A stretch of 64,000 nucleotides of DNA from Rebecca billardiae RCC1528 (taxonomy: Eukaryota > Protista > Haptophyta): assembly GCA_965240325.2 (NCBI GenBank), contig OZ251236.1, positions 434,001 through 498,000 of the forward strand, read 5' to 3'. Both the position numbers and the translations under genes were made by a program. Shown here in pieces: positions 1-28,331 of this stretch. The notes under the pieces are model-generated. The model had not been told where the DNA came from and made no database searches. It was given only the letters and a program-made list of their open reading frames with translations. Position 1 is the first letter of the stretch. Each line of letters starts with the position of its first letter.

Positions 1-3000
1 GCGACGCGCGCGGCGAAGCATAAAACGGTTTTGTGCGGCGCACGGGGCGGCCGGTGGCGTCGGTCGAGTCGCGAGCGGTGCGGCCGGGGTCGGAGGAGGA
101 GGCGGAGTCGCGCGCGTCCGTGGTGAAGCGCAGCCGCGGCACCACGTCCGGCTCGGCCGCGCCGCCGCCCACCGGCGGCGGCGCGCGCGGCGGCGGCGCG
201 CGCGGCGGCGGCGGCGCGGGCGGCGGCGGCGGCGCGTCGGCACTCGCGCGCCCGTGCGGCGGCGTGGACGGCATTGCCACTGTCACGCCCTCGAGCTCGA
301 CGGGCGCGGCGGCCGCCGCGCCGCGCGATGCCCCGCGCGGCGCCGGCGCCGCGTCCGCCTCGCGCCCCCGCGCCGCCGGCGCCGCGCCGCGCCAGTCCGC
401 GGGCCACTGCGCGGGCGGGCAGCGCGACGCGCCGCCGCCGGCCCAGCCCTCGGAGCTGCGCCGGCTGGCGTCGCCGCCAGAGCTGCGCCGGCGCGCGTCC
501 GAGGGCGCGGCGCCGCCGTACGCGCCGCCGCTCCGCCGCTCCGCGCCCCGCTCGTACGCGTCCCGCCCGCCGGACGAGTAACGGTCCCGCTCGTCGGCGT
601 AACGGCCGTACACAATATTGCGCAGCCCCACCGCCAGCCGGTCCTCTGAGGAGAGTCGGCGCGGCTGTGAGACGGCCCAGACGAGGCGGAAGAAGAGGAG
701 GGCGGGCCACGCGATGAGCGCGCTGAGGACCCCCGCGACGAGGATCGGCACGCCGCCCGGCGCCGACGCCTCCAGCGCCGCGAACCGCGCGCCCGTCGCC
801 GCCGCCACCGCCATCGCGTCCGTCGGCTCGGGCACGTCCGCGAGATTGTAATCTCGGACGGCGTCGTGGAAGAAGAGGCACTGCAGCACGAGCTGCAGCG
901 CGAGGAGGTTGAAGACGAGCTGGACGAACTCGGTGCGGCGCAGCGCGGGCGCGCGCGCGAACACGCACGCCACCACCGAGTGCTGCTCCAGCAGCCAGCG
1001 GCCGACGTGCCGCCCGCAGCTCGGCTCGGCGCCGGCGCCGCGCGAGCGGTCGGCGGCGCCGCGCGGCGCAGCGCGCGGTACCTGCTGCGCCGGCGCGGGC
1101 GGCGGCGGCGAGGGCGGCGGCGAGGGCGGGGGCGACGGGTTCCGCGCGCGCGCGTGCCGCCGGTCGAGCTCCTCCACCAGCGTGCGCGACGGCCCCATCG
1201 CCGCCTCCTTCGCCGCCGCCGCCGCCGCCCGCCGCTCCTGCCGACGGTCCACCAAAAACGCCAGCAGCAGAAAGAGAAGATGGCACAGCACAAGCGCGAG
1301 GACGACGTAGAACATGGGCGAGCGGAGGAGGGCGGCGGGGTTGGCGACGGCGTCGTCCGAGTCGTCGTCGTCGTCGTCGCGAGCGCGCCCGCGAGACGCC
1401 GCCTCCACCTCCTCCGCAAACTCCTGCGCGCGCGCGGGCGGGCGGCGAGCGCGCGCATGCGCGCAGTGAGGGCGCGCGCGCGCGCGCATGCGCGCATGCG
1501 TTCGCGCGCGCGCGGCGCCCGGCTTGGCCCGGCGTGGGCGCGGCGTGGCGTGGCGCTCGGGCGCGCACCTCGGGCACCCCCGGGCTCTCCGCGAACCGCA
1601 GCCCGGCGAACGTCGTCAGGTGGTCGCACACGCACGCACGCTCGCCCGTCGCCGCATCCGTGCGCGCCTCGCACCCGTCCGTCGACCACGCGAGCTCGTC
1701 CTCGTCCCAGAAGACGCAGGTCCAGGCGGAGGCGGGCGTGGCGGGGTCGGCGGGCGGGAGGGCGATGCGCGCCGCGGTGCTCAGGTTGGACACGCCCAGC
1801 GCCGAGCCGCTCGCGCCGTCGGCGAGCTCGACCGCGACGAGCGCCGTCTCGACGACGCCATCGCCGAGTCCGGTCGACTCGTTGGCGAACGGGCCGCCGA
1901 GTCCGGGCGGCGCGTACAGGTTGCGCAGCGTGGCGTAGATCACGATGTCGACGCCCGCGCTGAGCCCGCCCGAGACGGCCGCCGCGGCGGCGTCGAGCGA
2001 GCCCGGCGGCAGCGCGAGCGCCACGCCCGAGCCCGCCGGCCCGCCGAGCGTCCCGTTCTCCGTCGCCGCCTGCGTCAGCCGCGTCGCGCGCAGCTGCACG
2101 TGCGCGCCGAGCGCGTCGCGCGACACCTCGCCCGTCACGCCGCCCGCGAGGAAGGAGAGGCCGAGCCGGCTCGCGCCGAGCGCGGCGCGCTCGCCGATCG
2201 TCCGGCTCAGCGCCTCACCCACCGCCGACGCGTTCGCGCCGAGCACCGTGCTCAGCGTGCCGAGCGCGCCGCTCGCGGTCGCGTCGTCCGAGCCCTCGGC
2301 TAGCGCGCCCGACAGGAGCACCGCGAGTAGTGTAAGGACGTCCGCCTGCGTCTGGCCGGCGAGCACGTCGACGCCCGCGCCGACGATGGCGGCGAGCGTG
2401 CGCGCGGCCTGCGCGCGGTTCGGCTCGGTGTTCGCCGACGCGCCGATCGCCAGCCCCGCCAGCTCGACCATCCGCGCGCCGACGGTCGCGTTGAAAGGCG
2501 CGCAGTCGGCGGCGGTGCCGTTGAGAAAGCCGCTGCTGCCGTTCAGCGCGAGCGCGCGCCGGTTGGCGGCGGTCGCGGCGGGGTCGGGCGCGCTCACGAG
2601 CGCGAGCGCGTGCAGCAGCTGCTGCGCCTTGTCCGTGTCGCCGAGCGCCACCGCCGCCTCCGCGCGCGCGAGCAGAGTCTCGAGGTCGGCGGCGGCCGCG
2701 TCGGCAACGTCGACGGCCGCGCTGCCCGCTGCGACGCCGGCGTGGACGTCGGCGACCGCGACGGTGGCGAGCCGCGCGCCGGAGGGGAGGAAGGCGGTGG
2801 CGCTCGTCGCGGCGAGCGCCTCGGTGAGCGGCTCGCGCGAGCCCGACCCGCCCTCGTACCCGAACGTGTACCGCAGCGGCAGGTCCTCCGGGTCGTCCGC
2901 CCAGCCGGGCGCCGAGAGCGAAAACAACGTCACGGCGGCGACGCCCGCGGCGGGCGAGGCGACGAGCGCGCCGCCGAACGGCGGCCGATTCATCTGCACG

Positions 3001-6000
3001 CGCACCTCGGCGGTGGCGGGCGCGTCGCCGCCGCGCACGGTGAGCTCGAACGCGTACAGCGTGCCCGCCGCCAGCGCGCCCGAGCGGAACGCGAGGTTGG
3101 GCTGCGCGTCGCCCGTGGTGGTGTCAGTGAGGTCGGCGCTGAGGTCGAGGCCGGCGTCGACGAGCGCGCCCGCGGCGCTCACGGCGCGCGCGCGCCACGC
3201 GTAGTTGTACGCGGCGAGGCCCTGCGCCTGGAGCAGCGCGGACGCGGCGTCGACGCTGCCGACGATCGCGACGCGCGCCGACGGCAGCGTCCACGTCGGG
3301 TTGTACTTGGCGCGCGCGAGCGGCTCGATCGAGAGCGTCGGAACGTTCGCGGAAAGTACCGACACGTCGACCGACGCCGCGCCGCTCGCCCCGGTGCTCG
3401 CCGTCACGGTGAGCGTGAAGCGATAGGTGGCGCCGCCGCTGAGGGCGCCCGCGCCCACGTCGAGCAGCGCGCTCGAGCCGCCCGTCGCGCCGAGCGAGCC
3501 CAGGCTCGCCGCGATCTCCGCGCCCGACGTCGCGTTCAGCCGCGCCGCCGCCCACGCGTACGCCGCCAGCCCTGCCGTGTCGCCGTCTGCGTCGACGGAA
3601 GCCGAGCCGTCGAGGCGGAGTGCGGAGGCCTCGGAGAGGGTGCGGTCGCCGCCGGCGATGAGCGCGCGCGGCGCGAGCTCGGAGACGGCCACGCGCACGC
3701 GCGCCACCGCGCTCGCCGACGGCAGCGCCGCCATGCTCGCGCGCACGGCGAACGTGTAAGACGCGCCCGCGCTGAGCGCGCCTGCGGGCAGCAACAGGGA
3801 CGGTTGCGCGGCCGAGCCGGCTGGCAGCGCGTCGAGCGGCGCGGTGGGGTCGGCGAGCGCGGCGCCGCTCGAGGTGCGCACGGCGGACTCGATCTGCCAC
3901 GCGAACGCCACCTCGCCGCTCAGCGCCGACGGCCAGCACTCCGCCAGCGCCGCGCGCGCCAGCAGCACCGTCGCCACGTCTGGCCGCGCCGCGCGCAGGA
4001 ACGGGCCGTCGACGTCGACGGCGGGCGAGGCGCCGCTGCCGCGCGTGACAGTCCAGCGGGTGGCGGCGGAGGTGGCGCCGAGGAAGGAGGTGACGCGCAG
4101 GAGGAAGACCATCGTGCCCGACGTGGGCAGCGCGCTGCTCAGGCTCACCACCGCCGACGTCTGCCCGAGCAGCGCCGCGCGCAGCGCCGCCGCGCCGTCC
4201 GATCGAGACGCGTCCACCCGCCAGCTGTACGTCAACGGCACGATGCCGCCGCCGGACGAGGCGGAGCCGTCGAGGCGGAGGGTCTCGCCCGCGCAGAGGG
4301 AGAGCTCGGCGACGGCGGAGATCGCGGCGACGGGCGTCGGGCACCCGCCCTCGCCGCACGGCGCGTCCTCGTCGATCACCGCCGTCGAGTTGGAGCAGAG
4401 CTCGTGACCCGGACACGAGCCGGCCGGCAGCGCGGCCGGTCCGATCGCGCCAGGCCGCAGCGCGACCGTGTCACCAGGGCGCAGGTCTGTGAGGTAGTTG
4501 AGCTCGGCGATGAGGGTGGAGTCGTCCTGCCAGAAGCAGTTGGGCGGCGTGCCGAACGAGCCCTGGATCCGCGCCACCGTCGCGTCGTCCAGCGCCGCCG
4601 CGCACGGCTGCAGCCCGATCATGCCCGCGCGGTCGGTCGGCTGGCCGTCGAGGACGATACGCAGGTCCGAGGCATCGTCTGCAAACGTGGCCGAGATCAC
4701 CTCGGGCGCGTGGATGCCGATGAAGTCGAAGGAGGCGCCGGTGCCGCCGCGCGCGGCGTCGTCGGCCGCGCTGTACTGCCGCCCGTTCAGGCTCACCAGC
4801 ACCGGCGCCACGCCCTCGCGCCCCCACGCCGTCGTGAGCGCGATCGCTGTGTCGTTCACCGCGCGCGCGCTGAGGGCCGGCTGCGAGCTGTCGCCAAGGC
4901 GCACGCGGAGCACGGCGGCGGCGGCGGCGCGCACGTCGGCGGGGTCGAGGCCGGGCGAGTCGGTGGCGTCCTCGCCCGTGCCCACCGCGCCCGCGCCGCC
5001 GTCATCGCGCGCGCGCGCCAGCGTGTGCGCCAGCGCGGTGAACCCCGAGCCGCGCACCACGACACGGTCGCCGCCGCTCGCGAGCCCGCTCGGCGGCGCG
5101 ACGGAGGTGACGGCGGGGGGCGCGTAGAGGGCGAAGGGGAGGCGCGCGCGCGTGAGGCTGCGCGGCGCGCCGGCGTTGAGCGAGAGCTCGAGGCTCGCGG
5201 AGAACGCGGCGAGCGAGAGGTTCGCCACCGCCTGCGCAGAGCCGTTCAGCGCGCCCACGGCCGAGGCGGCGGGCAGCGTGCACCGCGCGCGCGTCGAGCC
5301 GTCGGACGCGCGCGGCGGCAGCAGCGTCGCGGGCGCGGCGCACGGCGCGCCGCCCGCGTCGAGCGCGGCCTCGGCCGCGTCGTCGGCCGCGCTGCCGGCG
5401 GGCCAGCGGCGCAGCAGCACGCAGCACAGCGCGTCGCCGCCGTACGCCGCGAACCCCGCGCCGACGAGCGTCACCACCGCGCCGCCGGCCACGGGGCCGC
5501 CCGGCGGCGAGATTGCAATCACGCGGAGGCCGCTGGAGTTGTATAGGGAGAAGGTGGGCGCGTCGAAGAGCGGCTCGAGCGGCGTGGCGCCGTCGAGCGC
5601 GAGGCTCACGCTGTACGCGCCCACGCTCGCGCTCGCGGGCAGCGCGGCGCACACCGCCTCGCCCGTGCCCGTCACGTTCGCGCGCACGACATGCGCGCCG
5701 CCGCCGCCGCCCGCGGCCGTCGAGTTGAACGTGCACGACGCGACGCCGGCCCCGAGGTCGACGAAGCCTGAGCCGCTGAGCGTGACGGGGAGCGGCGCGC
5801 CCGCGGGCGCGCCGCTCGGCTCCGCCGCCTCCACCACCGCCGAGTAGAAGACGAACGGCGCGCCCCCGTCCGCGCCGCCCGTGCTGTACGCCTGCCCGTT
5901 GAGCGAGACTTCCACCGCCACCTGCGCGCCCGAGCCGTCGGCGGCGGTGAGCGCGGAAGGCGACACGCGGGGCGCTGAGCAGAGCAGCGCGTCCGCCGAG

Positions 6001-24000: not shown

Positions 24001-27000
24001 GCAGTCGGCGGAGGCGACGGCGGTGGCGACGGTGGCGGGCTCGGCGGCGGGATCGGCGGCGGAGGCGACGGCGGCGGCGATGGCGGAGGCGACGGTGGTG
24101 GAGATGGCGGGGGGTTCGGCGGCGGTGACGGCGGTGGGCTTGGGGGTGGTGGGCTCGGCGGCGGGCTCGGCGGCGGGCTCGGCGGCGGGCTGGGCGGCGG
24201 CGAGGGCGGCGGCGACGGCGGCGGACTCGGCGGCGGGCTCGGTGGCGGCGAGGGCGGCCGACTTGGCGGCGGGCTGGGGGGCGGGCTCGGCGGCGGCGAG
24301 GGCGGCGGACTAGGCGGCGGAATGGGCGGCGGCGGGCTGGGCGGCGGGCTGGGTGGTGGGCTCGGTGGCGGCGATGGCGGCGGCGATGGCGGAGGTGACG
24401 GCGGAGGCGACGGCGGTGATGGCGGAGGCGACGGCGATGGTGGCGGAGGTGACGGCGATGGTGGCGGTGGCGACGCCAGAGGCGAAGGCGGCGGGCTCGG
24501 CGGGGGCTGCGGCGCAGTCGGCGGAGGCGACGGCGGTGGCGACGGTGGCGGGCTCGGCGGCGGGATCGGCGGCGGAGGCGACGGCGGCGGCGATGGCGGA
24601 GGCCACGGTGGTGGAGATGGCGGGGGGTTCGGCGGCGGTGACGGCGGTGGGCTTGGGGGTGGTGGGCTCGGCGGCGGGCTCGGCGGCGGGCTCGGCGGCG
24701 GGCTGGGCGGCGGCGAGGGCGGCGGCGACGGCGGCGGACTCGGCGGCGGGCTCGGTGGCGGCGAGGGCGGCCGACTTGGCGGCGGGCTGGGGGGCGGGCT
24801 CGGCGGCGGCGAGGGCGGCGGACTAGGCGGCGGAATGGGCGGCGGCGGGCTGGGCGGCGGGCTGGGTGGTGGGCTCGGTGGCGGCGATGGCGGCGGCGAT
24901 GGCGGAGGTGACGGCGGAGGCGACGGCGGTGATGGCGGAGGCGACGGCGATGGTGGCGGAGGTGACGGCGATGGTGGCGGAGGCGACGCCAGAGGCGAAG
25001 GCGGCGGGCTCGGCGGGGGCTGCGGCGCAGTCGGCGGAGGCGACGGCGGTGGCGACGGTGGCGGGCTCGGCGGCGGGATCGGCGGCGGAGGCGACGGCGG
25101 CGGCGATGGCGGAGGCGACGGTGGTGGAGATGGCGGGGGGTTCGGCGGCGGTGACGGCGGTGGGCTTGGGGGTGGTGGGCTCGGCGGCGGGCTCGGCGGC
25201 GGGCTCGGCGGCGGGCTGGGCGGCGGCGAGGGCGGCGGCGACGGCGGCGGACTCGGCGGCGGGCTCGGTGGCGGCGAGGGCGGCCGACTTGGCGGCGGGC
25301 TGGGGGGCGGGCTCGGCGGCGGCGAGGGCGGCGGACTAGGCGGCGGAATGGGCGGCGGCGGGCTGGGCGGCGGGCTGGGTGGTGGGCTCGGTGGCGGCGA
25401 TGGCGGCGGCGATGGCGGAGGCGACGGCGGAGGCGACGGCGGTGATGGCGGAGGCGACGGCGATGGTGGCGGAGGTGACGGCGATGGTGGCGGTGGCGAC
25501 GCCAGAGGCGAAGGCGGAGGGCTCGGCGGGGGCTGCGGCGCAGTCGGCGGAGGCGACGGCGGTGGCGAGGGTGGCGGGCTCGGCGGCGGGATCGGCGGCG
25601 GAGGCGACGGCGGCGGCGATGGCGGAGGCGACGGTGGTGGAGATGGCGGGGTGTTCGGCGGCGGTGACGGCGGTGGGCTTGGGGGTGGTGGGCTCGGCGG
25701 CGGGCTCGGCGGAGGGCTCGGCGGCGGGCTGGGCGGCGGCGAGGGCGGTGGCGACGGCGGCGGACTCGGCGGCGGGCTCGGCGGTGGCGAGGGCGGCGCA
25801 CTCGGCGGCGGGCTGGGGGGCGGGCTCGGCGGCGGCGAGGGCGGCGGACTAGGCGGCGGACTGGGCGGCGGCGGGCTGGGCGGCGGGCTGGGTGGTGGGC
25901 TCGGCGGCGGCGACGGCGGTGGCGATGGCGGAGGCGAGGGCGGAGAGCTCGGTGGCGGTGGCGACGGCGGCGGGGATGGTGGCGGCGAGGGCGGAGGCGA
26001 GGGCGGCGGTGAGGGCGGCGGTGACGGCGGTGGCGACGGTGGTAGCGACGGCGGAGGCGACGGTGGGGGCGAAGGCGATGGGCTTGGTGGCGGTGGCGAC
26101 GGCGGCGGGGATGGTGGCGGCGACGGCGGCGGACTGGGTGGCGGGCTCGGCGGCGGCGAGGGGGAATCAGGCGGCGGTGACGGCGGCGGACTCGGTGGCG
26201 GCGATGGCGGAGGCGACGGCGGCGGCAAAGGCGGCGGTGGTGATGGCGGTGGCGAGGGCGGCGGCGACGGTGGCGGCGAGGGCGGCGGCGAGGGCGGCGG
26301 CGAGGGCGGAGGCGTGGGCGGTGGAGATGGCGGCGGCGAGGGCGGAGGGCTCGGCGGCGGCGGCGAAGGCGGCGGCGACGGCGGTGGCGTCGGCGGCGGA
26401 CTAGGGGGCGGGCTCGGCGGTGGCGACGCCGCGGCCGGCGGTGGCGACGGCGGCGACGACGGCGGCGGCGACGGCGGCGGTGAGGGCGGTGGCACTGGTG
26501 GCGGGGGTGACGGTGGAGGTGACGGCGGCGGGCTTGGCGGCGGTGGTGATGGCGGAGGCGACGGCGGCGGCGACGGTGGCGGCGACGGCGGCGGCAAGGG
26601 CGGCGGAGTCGGTGGCGGCGGCGAAGGCGGCGGCGATGGCGGTGGCGATGGCGGTGGATTCGGTGGCGGGCTCGGCGGCGGCGCGGGCGACACTGGCGGC
26701 GGCGAGGGCGGCGGGCTCGGCGGCGGCGACGGCGGCGGAGACGGCGGCGGCGACGGCGGCGGCGACGGCGGCGGCATTGGCGGCGGGGGCGACGGCGGGG
26801 GCGATGGGGGCGACGAGGGCGGCGGCGAGGGCTGAGGCGACGGCGGAGGCGACGGTGGCGGTAACGGCGGAGGCGACGGCGGAGGCGACGGAGGCGGGCT
26901 CGGCGGCGGTGGCGACGGCGGCGGGGATGGTGGCGGCGATGGCGGCGGGCTCGGCGGCGGGCTCGGCGGCGGCGACGGTGGCGGTGACGGCGGCGGACTC

Positions 27001-28331
27001 GGTGGCGGCGACGGCGGCGGCAAGGGAGGCGGCATCGGCGGTGGGGGCGAGGGCGGAGGCGACGGCGGAGGCGACGGCGGCGGCGACGGTGGCGGTGATG
27101 GCGGAGGCGACGGCGGAGGCGACGGCGGCGGGCTGGGTGGCGGCGAGGGCGGCGGCACGGGAGGCAGCATCGGCGGTGGGGGCGATGGCGGAGGCGACGG
27201 CGGCGGCGATGGTGGCGGTGATGGCGGAGGCGACGGCGGAGGCGACGGCGGCGGGCTGGGTGGCGGCGAGGGCGGCGGCGAGGGAGGCGGCATCGGCGGT
27301 GGGGGCGACGGCGGGGGCGACGGCGGAGGCGACGGTGGCGGCGATGGTGGGGGCGACGGCGGGGGCGACGGCGGCGGGCTCGGCGGCGGTGGGGACGGCG
27401 GTGGGGATGGTGGCGGCGACGGCGGCGGGCTGGGTGGCGGGCTCGGCGGCGGCGACGGCGGCGGTGACGGCGGCGGACTCGGTGGCGGCGACGGCGGCGG
27501 CAAGGGAGGCGGCATCGGCGGTGGGGGCGACGGCGGAGGTGACGGCGGCGGCGATGGTGGCGGGCTCGGTGGCGGCGACGGCGGCGGTGACGGCGGCGGA
27601 CTCGGTGGCGGCGAGGGCGGCGGCGAGGGAGGCGGCATCGGCGGTGGGGGCGACGGCGGAGGCGACGGCGGCGGCGACGGTGGCGGTGATGGCGGAGGCG
27701 ACGGCGGAGGCGACGGCGGCGGGCTCGGCGGCGGTGGCGACGGCGGTGGGGATGGCGGCGGCGACGGCGGCGGCGACGGCGGCGGCGAGGGCGGCAGCGT
27801 TGGCGGTGGGGGTGATGGCGGCGGCGACGGCGGCGGCGGCGGCGACGGAGGCGGCGATGGCGGCGATGGCGGTGGCGAGGGCGGCGGGGGTGACGGTGGG
27901 GGCGACGGCGGCGGTGGGGATGGTGGCGGGTTTGGCGGGGGCAATGGCGGTGGCGTGGGAGGCGGCGGGCTGGGCGGCGGGCTGGGCGGCGGGCTGGGCG
28001 GCGGGCTGGGCGCCTCCTGCAAGCCGCGCCGAGGTGCGGCCGCTGTGGGCGCTGCGCGTCCAGGCCCATCGGCCGGCTCTGGGCGTGTGCGCGCTGCGCC
28101 CATACTCGCACCGGGCGCAAGGCCTGAGCTCGGCCCGCCATGGCCAGCCCATCCCACCGGAGCAGCTGTGGCGCGGGGCCGCTTGAGGTGCGCGGCGCTC
28201 TCAGCGCCGCGCGCCCAGGGCAATATCGAGCGTGCGTGCGGCGCGTGGACGAGGGTGCCGTGCAGCGCTATGACAAGCACGAGCGCCGCGTGCATCGGGG
28301 CGTACACGGGGCGGACGCGCTGCGCCCGCAT
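1..28331 (-). CDS. Giant polycystin-1/REJ-GPS-like cell-surface receptor with extensin-like Ser-Pro rods (>=~9,400 aa; 3' end runs off the window). Exon 1 28331-1569, exon 2 1423-<1
   Basis: Manual translation of the minus frame (codon first base = 2 mod 3) stays in register at 28331, 26879, 17159, 15839, 6599, 4499, 1979 and 1619; no stop found at the candidate positions checked. N-terminus MRAQRVRPVYAPMHAALVLVIALHGTLVHA (signal peptide; alternative ATG 28295), then SPPP blocks, Cys repeats, IPT, REJ and GPS. After the intron: TMs MFYVVLALVLCHLLFLLLAFLV, FVQLVFNLLALQLVLQCLFF and VPILVAGVLSALIAWPALLFFRLVW. Confidence 0.9.
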   Translation of the reverse strand, partial: MRAQRVRPVYAPMHAALVLVIALHGTLVHAPHARSILPWARGAESAAHLKRPRATAAPVGWAGHGGPSSGLAPGASMGAARTRPEPADGPGRAAPTAAAPRRGLQEAPSPPPSPPPSPPPSPPPPTPPPLPPPNPPPSPPPPSPPPSPPPPSPPPSPPSPPPSPPPPPSPPPSPPPPTLPPSPPPSPPPSPPPSPPPSPPPPSPPPSPPPSPPPSPPPSPPPSPPPSPPPPMPPPSPPPSPPPSPPPSPPPSPPPSPPPSPPPSPPPSPPPPMPPPLPPPSPPPSPPPSPPPSPPPSPPPSPPPSPPPSPPPSPPPPSPPPSPPPSPPPSPPPSPPPSPPPSPPPPMPPPSPPPSPPPSPPPSPPPSPPPSPPPSPPPSPPPSPPPPMLPPVPPPSPPPSPPPSPPPSPPPSPPPSPPPSPPPSPPPSPPPPMPPPLPPPSPPPSPPPSPPPSPPPSPPPSPPPSPPPSPPPSPPPPSPPPSPPPSPPPLPPPSPPPSPQPSPPPSSPPSPPPSPPPPMPPPSPPPSPPPSPPPSPPPSPPPSPPPVSPAPPPSPPPNPPPSPPPSPPPSPPPPTPPPLPPPSPPPSPPPSPPPSPPPPSPPPSPPPSPPPPVPPPSPPPSPPPSSPPSPPPAAASPPPSPPPSPPPTPPPSPPPSPPPPSPPPSPPPSPPPTPPPSPPPSPPPSPPPSPPPSPPPSPPPPLPPPSPPPSPPPSPPPSPPPDSPSPPPSPPPSPPPSPPPSPPPSPPPPSPSPSPPPSPPPSLPPSPPPSPPPSPPPSPPPSPPPSPPPSPPPPSSPPSPPPSPPPSPPPSPPPSPPPSPPPPSPPPSPPPSPPPSPPPSPPPSAPPSPPPSPPPSPPPSPPPSPPPSPPPSPPPSPPPSPPPPSPPPSPPPNTPPSPPPSPPPSPPPSPPPPIPPPSPPPSPPPSPPPTAPQPPPSPPPSPLASPPPPSPSPPPPSPSPPPSPPSPPPSPPPSPPPSPPPSPPPSPPPSPPPPIPPPSPPPSPPPSPPPSPPPSRPPSPPPSPPPSPPPSPPPSPPPSPPPSPPPSPPPSPPPPSPPPSPPPNPPPSPPPSPPPSPPPSPPPPIPPPSPPPSPPPSPPPTAPQPPPSPPPSPLASPPPPSPSPPPPSPSPPPSPPSPPPSPPPSPPPSPPPSPPPSPPPSPPPPIPPPSPPPSPPPSPPPSPPPSRPPSPPPSPPPSPPPSPPPSPPPSPPPSPPPSPPPSPPPPSPPPSPPPNPPPSPPPWPPPSPPPSPPPPIPPPSPPPSPPPSPPPTAPQPPPSPPPSPLASPPPPSPSPPPPSPSPPPSPPSPPPSPPPSPPPSPPPSPPPSPPPSPPPPIPPPSPPPSPPPSPPPSPPPSRPPSPPPSPPPSPPPSPPPSPPPSPPPSPPPSPPPSPPPPSPPPSPPPNPPPSPPPSPPPSPPPSPPPPIPPPSPPPSPPPSPPPTAPQPPPSPPPSPLASPPPPSPSPPPPSPSPPPSPPSPPPSPPPSPPPSPPPSPPPSPPPSPPPPSLPPSPPPSPPPSPPPSPPPSAPPSPPPSPPPSRPPSPPPSPPPSPPPSPPPSPPPSPPPPSPPPSPPPSPPPSPPPSPPPSPPPSPPPPIPPPSPPPSPPPSPPPTAPQPPPSPPPSPLASPPPPSPSPPPPSPSPPPSPPSPPPSPPPSPPPSPPPSPPPSPPPSPPPPSLPPSPPPSPPPSPPPSPPPSRPPSPPPSPPPSPPPSPPPSPPPSPPLSPPPSPPPSPPPPSPPPSPPPDPPPSPPPSPPPSPPPSPPPPIPPPSPPPSPPPSPPPTAPQPPPSPPPSPLASPPPPSPSPPPPSPSPPPSPPSPPPSPPPSPPPSPPPSPPPSPPPSPPPPSLPPSPPPSPPPSPPPSPPPSAPPSPPPSPPPSPPPSPPPSPPPSPPPSPPPSPPPSLPPPSPPPSPPPSPPPSPPPTPPPSPPPSPPPPIPPPSPPPLPPPSPPPTAPQPPPSPPPSPLASPPPPSPSPPPPSPSPPPSPPSPPPSPPPSPPPSPPPSPPPSPPPSPPPPSLPPSPPPSPPPSPPPSPPPSRPPSPPPSPPPSPPPSPPPSPPPSPPPSPPPSPPPSPPPPSPPPSPPPNPPPSPPPSPPPSPPPSPPPPIPPPSPPPSPPPSPPPTAPQPPPSPPPSPLASPPPPSPSPPPPSPSPPPSPPSPPPSPPPSPPPSPPPSPPPSPPPSPPPPSPPPSPPPSPPPSPPPSPPPSAPPSPPPSPPPSPPPSPPPSPPPSPPPSPPPSPPPSPPPPSPPPSPPPNPPPSPPPSPPPSPPPSPPPPIPPPSPPPSPPPSPPPTAPQPPPSPPPSPLASPPPPSPSPPPPSPSPPPSPPSPPPSPPPSPPPSPPPSPPPSPPPSPPPPSPPPSPPPSPPPSPPPSPPPSAPPSPPPSPPPSPPPSPPPSPPPSPPPSPPPSPPPSPPPPSPPPSPPPSPPPSPPPTPPPSPPPSPPPPIPPPSPPPSPPPSPPPTAPQPPPSPPPSPLASPPPPSPSPPPPSPSPPPSPPSPPPSPPPSPPPSPPPSPPPSPPPSPPPPSPPPSPPPSPPPSPPPSPPPSAPPSPPPSPPPSPPPSPPPSPPPSPPPSPPPSPPPSPPPPSPPPSPPPSPPPSPPPTPPPSPPPSPPPPIPPPSPPPSPPPSPPPTAPQPPPSPPPSPLASPPPPSPSPPPPSPSPPPSPPSPPPSPPPSPPPSPPPSPPPSPPPSPPPPSPPPSPPPSPPPSPPPSPPPSAPPTPPPSPPPSRPPSPPPSPPPSPPPSPPPSPPPSPPPPSPPPSPPPSPPPSPPPSPPPSPPPSPPPPIPPPSPPPSPPPSPPPTAPQPPPSPPPSPLASPPPPSPSPPPPSPSPPPSPPSPPPSPPPSPPPSPPPSPPPSPPPSPPPPSPPPSPPPSPPPSPPPSPPPSAPPSPPPSPPPSPPPSPPPSPPPSPPPSPPPSPPPSPPPPSPPPSPPPSPPPSPPPTPPPSPPPSPPPPIPPPSPPPSPPPSPPPTAPQPPPSPPPSPLASPPPPSPSPPPPSPSPPPSPPSPPPSPPPSPPPWPPPSPPPSPPPSPPPPSPPPSPPPSPPPSPPPSPPPSAPPTPPPSPPPSRPPSPPPSPPPSPPPSPPPSPPPSPPPPSPPPSPPPSPPPSPPPTPPPSPPPSPPPPIPPPSPPPSPPPSPPPTAPQPPPSPPPSPLASPPPPSPSPPPPSPSPPPSPPSPPPSPPPSPPPSPPPSPPPSPPPSPPPSPPPPSLPPSPPPSPPPSPPPSPPPSAPPSPPPSPPPSPPPSPPPSPPPSPPPSPPPSPPPSPPPPSPPPSPPPSPPPSPPPTPPPSPPPSPPPPIPPPSPPPSPPPSPPPTAPQPPPSPPPSPLASPPPPSPSPPPPSPSPPPSPPSPPPSPPPSPPPSPPPSPPPSPPPSPPPPSPPPSPPPSPPPSPPPSPPPSAPPSPPPSPPPSPPPSPPPSPPPSPPPSPPPSPPPSPPPPSPPPSPPPNPPPSPPPSPPPSPPPSPPPPIPPPIPPPSPPPSPPPTTQQPPPSPPPSPPPSPPPPSPPPPPPPSPPPTPPPSPPPPSPPPPPPPSPPPSPPSPSPPPSPPPSPPPSPPPSPPPLRPPSPPPSRPPPSSPPSPPPAPPPSPPPSPPPSPPPPLPSPPPSPLPLPPPSPPPSPPPMAPTPPPNPPPSPPPSPPPSPPPPSPPPSPPPPSRPPPLPPPSPPPSPPPPLPPPSPPPPSPPPSPPPPSPPPSPPPPAPPPSPPPPNFGCTDPVSLSYDSLATVLDPAPGTCVYAVRGCTAPRASNYNSRADVDNGKCTFPVFGCMATGALNYNSTATRQSACVFPVLGCTDSTALNFRAAANVDDGSCIAAVSGCMATRATNYDSSANVDDGSCVYPVRGCTDSTALNYRSAATADDGGCIVPVGGCLLTDALNYDSVATHQTWFSCLMPVLGCTDSSAYNYREAATLDDGGCIAKPGRRRLLSARHGRRLAAGCTVPSAANYDSAADSDDGSCVFSVQGCTDSTAENYDSGADTDDGTCEYAGCTDSTASNFDSTADVLDVTCEYTDVDGCANSLAENYLSSATVDDGTCVLRGCTSSSAANYDSSATDDDGSCQQEELGCTDSAASNYVSAATADDGGCVHFGCTNATATNFDSTANTDDGSCVEPTLGCADTLASNYDSSVTDDDGSCRYPGCQDSTAKNFWSTANFPDGLCEYYSPPPSPPSPPPSPPPSPPPSPPPSPPPSPPPSPPPSPPPSPPPPVPPPSPPPSPPPSPPPSPPPGPPPSPPPSPPPSPPPSPPPGPPPSPPPNPPPSPPPPLPPPSPPPSPPPPSPPPSPPPSPPSPPPSPPPSPPPSPPPAPPPPPRTLPFPPPSPPSPPPSPPPSPPPSPPPSPPPSPPPSPPPSPPPSPPPSPPPSPPPSPPPSSPPSPPPSPPPSPPPSPPPSPPPSPPPSPPPSSPPSPPPSPPPSPPPSPPPSPPPSPPPSPPPPVPPPSPPPSPPPSPPPAPPPSPPPSPPPSPPPSPPPSPPPPSPPPSPPPAPPPSPPPSPPPSPPPSPPPPSPPPSPPPSPPPSPPPSPPPSPPPSPPPPASAPAPPPSPPPSPPPSPPPAPPPSPPPSPPPSPPPPSTPPSPPPSPPPPAPPPSPPPSPPPPSPPPSPPPSPPPPSPPPSPPPSPPPPSPPPSPPPSPPPPSPPPSPPPAPPPSPPPSPPPAPPPSPPPPSPPPSPPPSPPPPSPPPSPPPSPPPSPPPSPPPSPPPSPPPPSPPPSPPPSPPPPSPPPSPPPSPPPPSPPPSPPPSPPPSPPPSPPPRPPPPPRVQPFPPPSPPAPPPSPPPSPPPAPPPSPPPSPPPSPPPSPPPPWPPPSPPPSPPPPSPPPSPPPSPPPPSPPPSPPPSPPPPSPPPSPPPSPPPPSPPPSPPPAPPPSPPPSPPPSPPPSPPPPSPPPSPPPSPPPPSPPPSPPPSPPPPSPPPSPPPSPPPSPPPSPPPPSPPPIPPPSPPPSPPPPSPPPSPPPSPPPPSPPPSPPPSPPPPSPPPSPPPGPPPSPPPSPPPSPPPSPPPPSPPPSPPPSPPPPSPPPSPPPSPPPPSPPPSPPPSPPPPSPPPLPPPVPPPSPPPSPPPSPPPSPPPPTPPPSPPPSPPPPATGPLPPPSPPPSPPPNPPPSPPPPSPPPSPPPSPPPPSPPPSPPPSPPPPSPPPSPPPSPPPPSPPPSPPPSPPPPSPPPSPPPSPPPSLPPTPPPSPPPSPPPPSPPPSPPPSPPPPSPPPSPPPSPPPPLPPPSPPPSPPPPSPPPLPPPSPPPPSPPPSPPPSPPPPSPPPSPPPAPPPSPPPSPPPLPPPPPRMLPFPPPSPPAPPPSPPPSPPPSPPPSPPPSPPPSPPPSPPPPSPPPSPPPSPPPPSPPPSPPPSPPPPSPPPSPPPSPPPPSPPPSPPPSPPPRPPPRPPPSPPPSPPPPAPPPSPPPSPPPPSPPPSPPPSPPPPSPPPSPPPSPPPPSPPPSPPPSPPPPSPPPSPPPSPPPPSPPPAPPPSPPPPTPPPSPPPSPPPPATAPVPPPSPPPSPPPAPPPSPPPPSPPPSPPPSPPPPSPPPTPPPSPPPPSPPPRPPPSPPPPSPPPSPPPSPPPPSPPPSPPPSPPPSPPPSPPPSPPPSPPPPSPPPSPPPSPPPPSPPPSPPPSPPPPSPPPSPPPSPPPPSPPPSPPPSPPPPSPPPYPPPAPPPSPPPSPPPLPPPPPRMLPFPPPSPPAPPPSPPPSPPPSPPPSPPPSPPPSPPPSPPPPSPPPSPPPSPPPPSPPPSPPPSPPPPSPPPSPPPSPPPPSPPPSPPPSPPPRPPPRPPPSPPPSPPPPAPPPSPPPSPPPPSPPPSPPPSPPPPSPPPSPPPSPPPPSPPPSPPPSPPPPSPPPSPPPSPPPPSPPPAPPPSPPPPTPPPSPPPSPPPPATAPVPPPSPPPSPPPAPPPSPPPPSPPPSPPPSPPPPSPPPTPPPSPPPPSPPPRPPPSPPPPSPPPSPPPSPPPPSPPPSPPPSPPPSPPPSPPPSPPPSPPPPSPPPSPPPSPPPPSPPPSPPPSPPPPSPPPSPPPSPPPPSPPPSPPPSPPPPSPPPSPPPSPPPPSPPPSPPPAPPPSPPPSPPPLPPPPPRMLPFPPPSPPAPPPSPPPSPPPSPPPSPPPSPPPSPPPSPPPPSPPPSPPPSPPPPSPPPSPPPSPPPPSPPPSPPPSPPPPSPPPSPPPSPPPPSPPPSPPPSPPPPSPPPSPPPSPPPPSPPPSPPPSLPPSPPPRPPPSPPPSPPPPSPPPSPPPSPPPPSPPPSPPPSPPPPSPPPSPPPSPPPPSPPPSPPPSPPPPSPPPSPPPSPPPPSPPPSPPPAPPPSPPPSPPPLPPPPPRMLPFPPPSPPAPPPSPPPSPPPSPPPSPPPSPPPSPPPSPPPPSPPPSPPPSPPPPSPPPSPPPSPPPPSPPPSPPPSPPPPSPPPSPPPSPPPPSPPPAPPPSPPPPTPPPSPPPSPPPPATAPLPPPSPPPAPPPSPPPPSPPPSPPPSPPPPSPPPLPPPSPPPPSPPPSPPPSPPPPSPPPSPPPSPPPPSPPPLPPPSPPPPSPPPSPPPSPPPPSPPPLPPPSPPPPSPPPSPPPSPPPPSPPPSPPPTPPPSPPPSPPPLPPPPPRMLPFPPPSPPAPPPSPPPSPPPSPPPSPPPSPPPSPPPSPPPRPPPSPPPSPPPSPPPPSPPPSPPPSPPPPSPPPSPPPSPPPPSPPPSPPPSPPPPSPPPSPPPSPPPPSPPPSPPPSPPPSPPPSPPPSPPPSPPPPSPPPSPPPSPPPPSPPPSPPPSPPPPSPPPSPPPSPPPPSPPPSPPPSPPPPSPPPSPPPSPPPPSPPPSPPPSPPPPSPPPSPPPSPPPPTPPPSPPPSSPPPATAPLPPPSPPPSPPPARPPSPPPSPPPSPPPALPPSPPPSPPPSPPPLPPPSPPPSPPPRPPPSPPPSPPPSPPPSPPPSPPPSPPPSPPPSPPPSPPPSPPPSPPPRPPPSPPPSPPPSPPPSPPPSPPPSPPPSPPPSPPPSPPPSPPPSPPPSPPPSPPPSPPPSPPPSPPPSPPPSPPPSPPPSPPPSPPPSPPPSPPPSPPPSPPPSPPPSPPPSPPPSPPPSPPPSPPPSPPPSPPPSPPPSPPPSPPPSPPPSPPPSPPPSPPPSPPPSPPPSPPPSPPPSPPPSPPPSPPPSPPPSPPPSPPPSPPPSPPPSPPPSPPPSPPPSPPPSPPPSPPPSPPPSPPPSPPPSPPPSPPPSPPPSPPPSPPPSPPPSPPPRPPPFPPPSPPPSPPPTPPPSPPPSPPPLPPPPPRTEPFPPPAPPSPPLPALALISITSFAPLGAALGRPTNLTLNGTGFLPAAHHAAGMSCELAPRDVVADPVVGSVTAVTATSLVCEIAASAAPTVLSDDVRVRVLAPAGQEPASADAPAPLVFYDADAQRPAAVSPAGAPAGLESPPQLVRVRAPPELVAAEGGYVDYGGLRCEFGVFGTVEATLTGSADALLCSAPRVSPSALTAADGSGAQVAVEVSLNGQAYSTGGADGGAPFVFYSAVVEAAEPSGAPAGAPLPVTLSGSGFVDLGAGVASCTFNSTAAGGGGGAHVVRANVTGTGEAVCAALPASASVGAYSVSLALDGATPLEPLFDAPTFSLYNSSGLRVIAISPPGGPVAGGAVVTLVGAGFAAYGGDALCCVLLRRWPAGSAADDAAEAALDAGGAPCAAPATLLPPRASDGSTRARCTLPAASAVGALNGSAQAVANLSLAAFSASLELSLNAGAPRSLTRARLPFALYAPPAVTSVAPPSGLASGGDRVVVRGSGFTALAHTLARARDDGGAGAVGTGEDATDSPGLDPADVRAAAAAVLRVRLGDSSQPALSARAVNDTAIALTTAWGREGVAPVLVSLNGRQYSAADDAARGGTGASFDFIGIHAPEVISATFADDASDLRIVLDGQPTDRAGMIGLQPCAAALDDATVARIQGSFGTPPNCFWQDDSTLIAELNYLTDLRPGDTVALRPGAIGPAALPAGSCPGHELCSNSTAVIDEDAPCGEGGCPTPVAAISAVAELSLCAGETLRLDGSASSGGGIVPLTYSWRVDASRSDGAAALRAALLGQTSAVVSLSSALPTSGTMVFLLRVTSFLGATSAATRWTVTRGSGASPAVDVDGPFLRAARPDVATVLLARAALAECWPSALSGEVAFAWQIESAVRTSSGAALADPTAPLDALPAGSAAQPSLLLPAGALSAGASYTFAVRASMAALPSASAVARVRVAVSELAPRALIAGGDRTLSEASALRLDGSASVDADGDTAGLAAYAWAAARLNATSGAEIAASLGSLGATGGSSALLDVGAGALSGGATYRFTLTVTASTGASGAASVDVSVLSANVPTLSIEPLARAKYNPTWTLPSARVAIVGSVDAASALLQAQGLAAYNYAWRARAVSAAGALVDAGLDLSADLTDTTTGDAQPNLAFRSGALAAGTLYAFELTVRGGDAPATAEVRVQMNRPPFGGALVASPAAGVAAVTLFSLSAPGWADDPEDLPLRYTFGYEGGSGSREPLTEALAATSATAFLPSGARLATVAVADVHAGVAAGSAAVDVADAAAADLETLLARAEAAVALGDTDKAQQLLHALALVSAPDPAATAANRRALALNGSSGFLNGTAADCAPFNATVGARMVELAGLAIGASANTEPNRAQAARTLAAIVGAGVDVLAGQTQADVLTLLAVLLSGALAEGSDDATASGALGTLSTVLGANASAVGEALSRTIGERAALGASRLGLSFLAGGVTGEVSRDALGAHVQLRATRLTQAATENGTLGGPAGSGVALALPPGSLDAAAAAVSGGLSAGVDIVIYATLRNLYAPPGLGGPFANESTGLGDGVVETALVAVELADGASGSALGVSNLSTAARIALPPADPATPASAWTCVFWDEDELAWSTDGCEARTDAATGERACVCDHLTTFAGLRFAESPGVPEVRARAPRHAAPTPGQAGRRARANACAHARARAPSLRACARSPPARARAGVCGGGGGGVSRARSRRRRRRLGRRRRQPRRPPPLAHVLRRPRACAVPSSLSAAGVFGGPSAGAAGGGGGGEGGGDGAVAHAGGGARPAARARAEPVAPALAAALAAAARAGAAGTARCAARRRRPLARRRRRAELRAARRPLAAGAALGGGVRVRARARAAPHRVRPARLQPPRAAARAAVPLLPRRRPRLQSRGRARADGRDGGGGGDGRAVRGAGGVGAGRRADPRRGGPQRAHRVARPPLLPPRLGRLTAAPTLLRGPAGGGAAQYCVRPLRRRAGPLLVRRAGRVRAGRGAAERRRVRRRRALGRAPAQLWRRRQPAQLRGLGRRRRVALPARAVARGLARRGAGGAGARGGRGAGAARGIARRGGRRARRARGRDSGNAVHAAARARECRRAAAAARAAAAARAAAARAAAGGRRRGRAGRGAAAALHHGRARLRLLLRPRPHRSRLDRRHRPPRAPHKTVLCFAARV
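1424..1568 (-). other. Spliceosomal intron (145 nt) between the GPS motif and TM1 of the giant gene
   Basis: Donor GAG|GTGCGC at 1568, acceptor CGCAG|GAG at 1424, (GC)n-rich interior. Splicing shifts the frame into the TM-encoding exon (EFAEEVEAASRGRARDDDD...). Confidence 0.8.
1599..1718 (-). other. GPS (GAIN-domain autoproteolysis) motif
   Basis: CVFWDEDELAWSTDGCEARTDAATGERACVCDHL|TTFAGL matches the C-x-F-W...W...GC...C-x-C-x-H-L-T-x-F consensus. Confidence 0.92.
2740..4330 (-). other. REJ domain region of the giant protein (boundaries approximate)
   Basis: LRLDGSASxDxD, YxW and LxxGxxYxFxLxV modules, plus NRPPFGGALVASPAAGVAAVTLFSLSAPGWADDPEDLPLRYTFGY, typical of the REJ C-terminal part. 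Confidence 0.85.
5110..6500 (-). other. About four tandem IPT/TIG-like Ig domains (boundaries approximate)
   Basis: ITSFAPLGAALGRPTNLTLNGTGF; VEVSLNGQAYS..PFVFY; AEPSGAPAGAPLPVTLSGSGF; VIAISPPGGPVAGGAVVTLVGAGF. Confidence 0.75.
6505..15804 (-). repeat. Ser-Pro3/Pro4 extensin-like block B (~3,100 codons) with higher-order 0.7-1.2 kb duplications
   Basis: Continuous SPPP/SPPPP coding. Anchor motif R-[MTV]-[LEQ]-P-F-P recurs near 6545, 8536, 9355, 10081, 11281, 12442, 14005 and 15350; 10081-11280 and 11281-12441 are near-copies. Confidence 0.9.
15810..17159 (-). repeat. 17 Cys-rich GC(T/M)DxxAxN(Y/F)xxxAxxDDGSC repeats
   Basis: Translated units such as GCTDSTALNYRSAATADDGGC and GCTDSTAENYDSGADTDDGTC; 8 units, then RRRLLSARHGRRLA, then 9 units. 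Confidence 0.9.
17162..28010 (-). repeat. Ser-Pro extensin-like block A (~3,600 codons) containing a 513-bp (171-aa) tandem array, 15 full units at ~18185-25891
   Basis: Anchor gacgccagaggcgaa and the + strand shadow ORF starts recur every 513 bp (one 525-bp unit); units are near-identical. Confidence 0.93.

Follow-up and report, generated by a model that had tools for sequence, protein, structure and literature searches.

A candidate one-gene surface filament on a polycystin-1-type base in a pavlovophyte haptophyte

Can a single gene encode a long filament of the cell surface together with the membrane base that holds it? This question is raised by a 64,000-nucleotide stretch of contig OZ251236.1 (positions 434,001 to 498,000) of the haptophyte Rebecca billardiae RCC1528, hereafter the window, whose first 28,331 positions carry a giant minus-strand gene. 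A preliminary description, made from the DNA letters and a list of open reading frames (ORFs), had read this gene as a polycystin-1-like receptor on a stalk of Ser-Pro repeats. Judged by its sequence, the gene of this pavlovophyte haptophyte is real and apparently intact, and would encode a membrane protein with no fewer than 9,395 residues, which makes it a good candidate for a hair of the surface or flagellum built from one gene. Our preferred reading, which we consider somewhat probable, is an intact one-polypeptide surface filament or tether on a self-cleaving polycystin-1-type base.

The reading frame, its rods and their relatives

The giant exon that the preliminary description had placed at 28331-1569 of the minus strand was borne out by the computed translation. 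It is a single exon of 26,763 nucleotides (8,921 codons), uninterrupted by stop or frameshift, and a splice donor follows right after 1569, at the exon end set by that first reading. In-frame stops, named there as a ground for refuting the gene, are absent from all 9,525 codons of the minus-strand frame (28577 to 3). The first base of exon 2 is 1423. With the 474 codons of exon 2, the coding length inside the window comes to 9,395 codons, or ~909 kDa for the unmodified protein, and there are no N bases across the sequence. The outer part of the gene is laid out as follows.

28242-28331, minus strand: start codon (ATG at 28331, alternative ATG at 28295) and predicted signal peptide MRAQRVRPVYAPMHAALVLVIALHGTLVHA, from the translation
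28014-28241, minus strand: N-terminal tip, 76 residues, non-repetitive and headless, of low complexity and without cysteine
17160-28013, minus strand: rod 1, 3,618 residues of SPPP/SPPPP-type repeats (frame residues 189-3806)
17838-25544, minus strand: higher-order repeat in rod 1, 15 tandem copies of 171 residues (513 bp) each
15792-17159, minus strand: mid-rod module, 456 residues, 17 two-cysteine repeats with the consensus GCTDSxAxNYDSxATxDDGxC
6543-15791, minus strand: rod 2, 3,083 residues of SPPP/SPPPP-type repeats (frame residues 4263-7345)

The signal peptide was called by visual reading of the translation, without a predictor. A basic n-region leads into a hydrophobic core, with V-H-A ahead of the predicted cut, and G+C drops to 0.68 upstream of the start codon. 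The N-terminal tip matches no Pfam family, even at E<=10.

In terms of base composition, the window has 74% G+C, with 75-86% at positions 6,001-28,000 and a plus strand strongly skewed towards G over C. Long open frames come cheaply at the ~84% G+C of the rod region. Competing frames over the same stretch stay open for up to ~3,300 codons, and six spurious ORFs of 1,600-3,200 residues are listed in wrong frames or strands of the rods (window positions 1-28600). The signal peptide, both rods, the cysteine module and the base domains all lie in one frame, and no other frame links them. This frame is missing from the mechanical ORF list because the list skips ORFs that run past the window end. 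The gene had been called “hidden”, which is correct as regards the ORF track; it carries no biological meaning, being a product of the rule of that list and, in public annotation, of repeat masking.

The rods are composed mostly of SPPP and SPPPP units, the SP3-4 repeats of the preliminary description, and their summed length of 6,701 residues (3,618 and 3,083) agrees with its figure of ~6,700. Rod 1 has 581 SPPP and 92 SPPPP units, against 482 and 134 in rod 2. Both are ~73% Pro and 21-22% Ser; rod 1 contains 2,625 Pro, 799 Ser and no Tyr, and rod 2 has a single Tyr. The end of rod 2 is marked by the motif ...PPPPPRTEPFPPPAPPSPP, which recurs ahead of the REJ part in a relative from Pavlovales sp. 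CCMP2436.

Both codon families, AGY and TCN, are used for serine (317 and 482 in rod 1; 319 and 317 in rod 2), and SPPP is encoded by 60 distinct 12-mers in rod 1 and 86 in rod 2. Amino-acid entropy is 1.1-1.2 bits in the coding frame and 2.0-2.8 bits in the other two, the third codon position is the most variable in the rods, and not one frameshift occurs across 20 kb of rod repeat. The mixed serine codons, the many SPPP 12-mers and the low entropy of the frame show, therefore, that the rods are kept as protein. Selection acts on the SPPP reading, rather than on the DNA repeat.

Two other accounts of the locus were rejected. The long frame as a mere G+C artefact was set aside on the grounds that one frame joins all domains and that constraint is seen at the protein level. 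The rods as introns were set aside given the shared frame, the serine codon mix, the synonymous diversity and the continuity from rod to REJ in relatives.

Part of rod 1 is young. The markers TAP, QPPP, LASPPPP and IPPP return once in each 171-residue unit, and the 513-bp copies are 95-100% identical in DNA, three of them being identical and one bearing a 4-residue insertion. Since the copies are so nearly identical, the length of the rod is probably variable. The same 15 copies, together with the lack of a close protein in public collections, could point to an artefact of assembly or decay, with a length inflated or collapsed by repeat misassembly or with an unexpressed relic in place of a working gene. 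We regard this as highly improbable, given that there are no N bases and no frameshift or stop in 26.8 kb, that the units encoding SPPP are diverse outside the higher-order repeat, and that the single-copy domains on either side are both intact and conserved.

Rod 2 (6543-15791, minus strand) has an irregular higher-order repeat of its own, with the marker pair RMLP/FPPP spaced 242-400 residues apart. Groups of APPP and RPPP markers return alongside this pair.

Among 1.84 billion representatives, an exhaustive search returned no protein at least 50% identical to the REJ-GPS part, so the gene is without a public protein model. At E<=0.001 this part has 2,374 relatives in the exhaustive search. 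Identities of the relatives range over 35-42%, the best being 38-42% identical across the full query, and the named ones come from Pavlovales sp. CCMP2436 (KAJ1635852.1) and Diacronema lutheri (KAG8459354.1 and KAG8462819.1). These relatives mark the source as a pavlovophyte haptophyte, with which its very high G+C content agrees. Two Logan contigs with relatives (L004 and L005) are genomic.

The genome of D. lutheri, with 73.25% G+C, was assembled from PacBio reads and repeat-masked ahead of gene prediction (PMC8379373). On its contig JAGTXO010000041.1 (L003:4051-21813, plus strand) we found an uninterrupted frame of 5,921 codons that opens with a signal peptide. This is followed by ~1,900 residues of SPPP, a small domain with one cysteine repeat, a short proline block and the REJ-GPS-transmembrane part. 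The public model KAG8459354.1 (3,751 residues) begins at locus position 10001, ~1,980 residues late, a truncation that is probably due to repeat masking before gene prediction. To judge from this example, masking probably costs the public versions of such genes ~2,000 residues or more. About 4 kb beyond the downstream end of its rod-REJ gene, the D. lutheri contig carries a gene of glycosyltransferase family 29 (sialyltransferase-type; L003:26110-27509, plus strand).

In CCMP2436 (MU631364.1, L001:8400-10030, plus strand) an SPPP frame enters the REJ gene in frame, spanning N-run gaps. The SPPP stretch closes with a PPPRFLPFPPPAPP-type motif, as rod 2 does, and KAJ1635852.1 starts right after it. 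The rod-on-REJ layout is thus conserved, at the level of sequence, in two other Pavlovales. The second D. lutheri relative has no rod, and the family therefore has both rod-bearing and rod-less members. Upstream of the SPPP stretch of CCMP2436, a small non-repeat domain (DVDGPALACKLAVFL...) is present on both sides of a gap, pointing to misassembly or duplication of the segment.

These relatives also bear on whether the gene model is overlong, with Ser-Pro blocks that are partly intron or untranslated, or with the rod and the REJ-GPS part on separate transcripts. In the rods each of the three frames is mostly open, GC-rich introns are hard to spot and the gene is read from genomic DNA, all of which would suit such a model. 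We consider it improbable in view of the common frame of signal peptide, rods, cysteine module and base, of the AGY/TCN usage and synonymous diversity, which indicate selection on SPPP throughout, and of the in-frame continuity from rod to REJ in both D. lutheri and CCMP2436.

Bead module, cleavable junction and membrane base

The 17 cysteine repeats that separate the rods are 24-29 residues each, except for one of 41. Repeat 8 contains a 15-residue basic insert, GRRRLLSARHGRRL (~16479-16526, minus strand; frame residues 4019-4034), which is modelled with low confidence and may serve as a hinge open to proteases midway along the filament. An AlphaFold2 (AF2) model of the module, with a predicted local distance difference test score (pLDDT) of 82.7 and a predicted template modelling score (pTM) of 0.32, gives a string of small beta units. 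The model is locally confident and globally undefined, as would be expected for beads on a string.

No Pfam match (E<=10) and no NCBIfam family was obtained for the module, and the whole module has no match among PDB sequences. The repeat matches more than 6,000 proteins; the named ones belong to marine Flavobacteriales, many with a type IX secretion sorting domain. Among solved structures, the sole counterpart is one copy of the repeat at residues 332-353 of animal MPEG-1/perforin-2 (E 0.022 with a profile of the 17 single repeats; 24 columns in Foldseek at 0.5-0.6 Å root-mean-square deviation (rmsd) and 54% identity). By sequence, the repeat appears to be a widespread undescribed mini-domain common to bacteria, this alga and animals. 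In this protein the module most plausibly serves as a jointed spacer or a binding site near the midpoint of the filament.

The part of the gene that follows rod 2 contains these features.

4653-6542, minus strand: four to five IPT/TIG-type Ig-like domains with recurrent G-x-G-F motifs (Pfam TIG 1.1e-14)
2673-4580, minus strand: PKD-like Ig domains and REJ domain (Pfam)
1569-2672, minus strand: GAIN-type region with GPS CVFWDEDELAWSTDGCEARTDAATGERACVCDHL/TTFAGL, the slash marking the cut (Pfam GPS 4.7e-9)
1424-1568, minus strand: intron of 145 nucleotides, GT-AG, phase 0 (donor GAG/GTGCGC after 1569, acceptor CAG/)
590-1423, minus strand: conserved part of exon 2, with stalk, transmembrane helices (TM) 1 to 3, loop and YGRY tail, from alignment to relatives
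1250-1315, minus strand: TM1, hydrophobic helix
869-928, minus strand: TM2, hydrophobic helix
671-751, minus strand: TM3, hydrophobic helix
2-589, minus strand: low-complexity continuation of the open frame to the window edge, putatively coding (relatives are disordered here)

The preliminary description had listed IPT, REJ, a GPS with the cut HL/T, and transmembrane helices. All were recovered, as Pfam matches to TIG, REJ and GPS and as three helices in exon 2. The globular part after rod 2 has ~1,660 residues, within which the IPT/TIG domains were counted by eye. The match to REJ (PF02010) has an E-value of 7.2e-40 and 137 bits, for a cut-off of 25, and the PKD-like domains match PKD_4 (2.4e-8) and K319L-like PKD (2.1e-9).

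The GPS reads CVCDHL/TTF at 1608-1634, with HL/T at 1608-1622, and the Cys/Trp pattern is present. The GAIN/GPS region aligns with the GAIN domains of ADGRG3 and ADGRG6 (E 1e-4). Holding all consensus residues for autoproteolysis, the site is putatively cleavage-competent.

Across the intron, the spliced junction ...SPGVPE/EFAEEVEAA... corresponds to the conserved acidic stalk, VPTSAEELEEE, that follows the GPS in relatives. The helices of exon 2 align with TM1-TM3 of these proteins and keep the invariant residues of the family, a D after TM1, an H, R-x-E and a P. This correspondence comes from a multiple alignment, the BLASTP match between exon 2 and the relatives' C-termini being nearly insignificant. 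The continuation at 2-589 has no Pfam match at E<=10.

The common layout of the relatives is [TIG]-REJ-GPS-TM1-IQ-type motif-TM2-TM3-disordered loop-EF-hand pair-TM4-TM5. Both the EF-hand pair (calmodulin, 1e-25 to 1e-35) and the IQ-type motif are present in the family. In the gene under study, the EF-hand pair and TM4-TM5 would, by comparison with the relatives, fall beyond the window. Its cytoplasmic TM1-TM2 loop carries SPPPSPPPSPPPP (1097-1135, minus strand) at the site of the relatives' calmodulin-binding-type motif, IQRxxRGxxxR. This rod-type repeat is unexpected on the cytoplasmic side, and may have arisen by conversion or insertion from a rod.

As for the fold of the base, an AF2 model of a compact relative (P0009, residues 1028-1609, pLDDT 62) was set against 48,161 representative chains. 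The top match is polycystin-1 in the polycystin-1/polycystin-2 complex 8z6b_A (Z 17.9, rmsd 2.8 Å over 197 residues), followed by EF-hand proteins with Z <=12.9. Model residues 14-537 superpose on PKD1 3063-3610, that is, on the stalk after the GPS and TM1-TM5. The match was obtained solely with the exhaustive structural aligner. Foldseek with the same base model returned calmodulin only and no polycystin-1, and sequence profiles of the base helices found EF-hand and IQ proteins only and no polycystin in the PDB. The model suggests a polycystin-1 TM1-TM5 fold for the family's membrane base.

Other domains of possible receptors were looked for as well. PLAT has no Pfam match in exon 2 (E<=10) or in four relatives. 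PKD_channel has none in the relatives, whose chains stop soon after TM5, so that the TM6-TM11 half is absent. The 7tm (class B) domain has no match in exon 2 or in the relatives, which show five helices. The model thus points to a family that has the front half of polycystin-1 (REJ, GAIN/GPS, TM1-TM5), is PLAT-less and, in the relatives, lacks the channel half. The description of the gene as polycystin-1-like holds for REJ, GPS and the TM1-TM5 fold; it does not extend to full membership, given the missing PLAT and the relatives without the channel half.

Proposed working of the protein

From the signal peptide and the order of the transmembrane helices, it follows that ~8,900 residues are extracellular and that the TM1-TM2 and TM3-TM4 loops are cytoplasmic. 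In the reading that we prefer, two Ser-Pro3 rods joined by 17 small disulfide beads would be borne on TIG/PKD Ig-like and REJ domains, and the rods would make up a long filament or tether at the cell surface, probably with glycosylation. The chain would be cut by the GAIN domain, which would also hold its two halves together. A pull on the filament could then strain or remove the outer half, leaving the TTFAGL stalk exposed, and a signal may pass to the helix bundle and to the calcium/calmodulin-type cytoplasmic loops. Alternatively, the filament may merely be shed. Hydroxylation, glycosylation, stiffness, cleavage, signalling and the location, whether on the flagellum or the cell body, are here inferred. 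The flagellar placement, the shedding and the activation by GPS cleavage proposed in the preliminary description are, likewise, inference only.

A length of ~2 µm had been proposed for the extended protein. The arithmetic is right for a fully extended polyproline II helix, where 6,701 residues at 0.31 nm give 2.08 µm, with contours of ~1.1 and 1.0 µm for the two rods. Mstax, the axial protein of the Chlamydomonas mastigoneme, extends 2,173 residues over ~660 nm (bioRxiv 2024.12.24.630281). At the 0.30 nm per residue derived from it, the rods total ~2.0 µm. The straightness of the rods hinges on hydroxylation and glycosylation. By our estimate, the unglycosylated rods would not stand as a 2-µm rod, and would collapse into a flexible coil some hundreds of nm in diameter.

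Several observations weigh against this filament reading. At 84% G+C, the openness of the frame alone is little proof, and no close public protein vouches for expression. The length of rod 1 is sensitive to assembly error at the 15-copy array and is probably variable. For haptophytes, unlike plants and green algae, glycosylation of hydroxyproline (Hyp) is not established, and rods without glycans would be flexible. The copy in the window is without the IQ motif and its C-terminus lies beyond the window. Finally, the fold of the base was tested on the relative P0009 (pLDDT 62), with no polycystin match from Foldseek or from sequence profiles.

Some of these points are shared by the main rival, a passive coat or tether role. 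Here the gene is the same, and the rods are a flexible mucin-like spacer or brush in a cell coat, or a tether for knob scales or other material, with the REJ-GAIN base acting mainly as an anchor and release point that senses nothing. A tip without a head domain, rods without Tyr cross-link motifs, a rod length that is variable and recently amplified, the loss of the IQ motif in the window copy and the glycosylation not established for haptophytes are all consistent with it. Against it, the GPS, stalk, helix bundle and EF-hand/IQ elements of the family exceed the needs of a passive anchor. We hold such a coat to be possible, though on balance unlikely.

The filament reading can be taken further, to a proposal that we advance tentatively and rather doubt. 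Pavlovophyte hairs or filaments would each be one giant polypeptide (“one-gene hairs”), with a GAIN joint on a channel-less polycystin-1-type bundle that reads tension through calcium/calmodulin-type loops. If this were true, the front half of polycystin-1 would originally have served to sense force at the foot of an extracellular filament, a role that arose or was kept separately from the MST3-PKD2 system of green algae. The bead module in the middle of the rods would then be a built-in marker ~1 µm from the membrane.

Meaning and comparison with known systems

In the literature searched, no paper ties haptophytes to polycystin, REJ or hydroxyproline-rich proteins, and no dimensions of pavlovophyte flagellar hairs were found. 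To our knowledge, none of the proteins of haptophyte hairs and coats is known. Polycystin-1 is of major importance in human disease, and the stimulus that its huge ectodomain senses is debated. The locus offers the REJ-GAIN-TM1-5 front half without the channel half, on a filament whose length is encoded by the gene, and the alga can be cultured and has a small genome. Provided that the protein is expressed at the surface, it would be a simple system for how a GAIN joint and the N-terminal bundle of polycystin-1 read force on the ectodomain. The rod-REJ genes would, in that case, be candidate genes for haptophyte hairs and coats. In addition, rods of the hydroxyproline-rich type may occur beyond plants and green algae.

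The polycystin-1 family (human PKD1, PKD1L1-3 and PKDREJ; sea-urchin suREJ; C. elegans LOV-1) shares with the protein the REJ domain, the PKD/Ig-like domains, the GAIN/GPS with HL/T, the stalk and TM1. It also shares a very large ectodomain and, judging from the modelled relative, a five-helix base that superposes on PKD1 3063-3610. In the TM1-TM2 loop polycystin-1 has PLAT, where the relatives have an IQ-type motif and the window copy a short SPPP insert. The TM6-TM11 channel-like half of polycystin-1 is absent from the relatives, whereas the EF-hand pair in the TM3-TM4 loop is a feature of the relatives. No counterpart to 6,700 residues of Ser-Pro rods exists in polycystin-1.

The TTFAGL stalk resembles the tethered agonists of adhesion G-protein-coupled receptors (GPCRs) and of polycystin-1. 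For polycystin-1, stalk agonism is reported (PMC11458180; PMC9672506). With the adhesion GPCRs ADGRG3 and ADGRG6, the protein has in common the GAIN/GPS, this stalk and a long adhesive ectodomain above a cleavable junction. Their membrane part is a seven-helix class B domain, in contrast to the five-helix polycystin-1-type bundle seen in the relatives.

As for the rods, in plants and green algae Ser-Pro3-4 directs Hyp-arabinosylation and Ser-galactosylation (PMC11015965). Extensin-type hydroxyproline-rich glycoproteins (HRGPs) have similar blocks of Ser-Pro3-5 repeats. They carry Tyr cross-link motifs (YxY, VYK), which the rods described here lack, with no Tyr in rod 1 and one in rod 2. Compared with them, the protein is membrane-anchored, ~10-100x longer and encoded by a haptophyte, for which such modifying enzymes are not established.

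That single-chain repeat rods exist in nature is also seen in TLP-4, a glycofibril from pond water. Its only protein is one linear chain of Pro/Ser/Thr tetrapeptide repeats, with a rise of 12.4 Å per four residues and a glycan coat that keeps the fibril straight (PMC11725842). Each repeat has one (dihydroxy)proline (P-S/T-x-x), and the source organism and gene are unknown (PMC11725842). TLP-4 is not built of SPPP, and any link is one of analogy only.

The best functional analogue is MST3/Mstax, in which a single HRGP chain spans the hair and has a polycystin-type membrane anchor. This protein is one Hyp-rich chain of ~8,000 residues that includes a PKD2-like membrane domain of its own (PMC11015965). 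Its N-terminus lies at the distal tip, and Hyp-rich polyproline-II segments set the length of the filament (PMC11015965; bioRxiv 2024.12.24.630281). The PKD2-like channel domain lacks S1 and is completed by SIP, lectin domains are present and there is no REJ/GPS; Hyp glycosylation was seen directly in MST1 and MST3 (PMC11015965). Mstax has 34 Hyp11-(X2Hyp)n-Hyp12 repeats that bind MST1 (bioRxiv 2024.12.24.630281).

The preliminary description had likened the gene to a mastigoneme-PKD2 arrangement within one polypeptide. The analogy stands and its newness does not, because MST3/Mstax is already a single chain (PMC11015965). The single-chain idea is thus not new in principle, and the differences from MST3 are substantial. 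The protein reported here has a REJ-GAIN-5TM base, no channel domain, no lectin and a bead module, and its host belongs to another eukaryotic supergroup. Its rods are SPPP/SPPPP with a 171-residue higher-order repeat, not Hyp11-(X2Hyp)n-Hyp12, and the mastigoneme chains of the PDB give no sequence match at E<=0.01. Lastly, the copy in the window is distinctive in being headless and in having two rods, a module of 17 beads and a 15-copy higher-order repeat.

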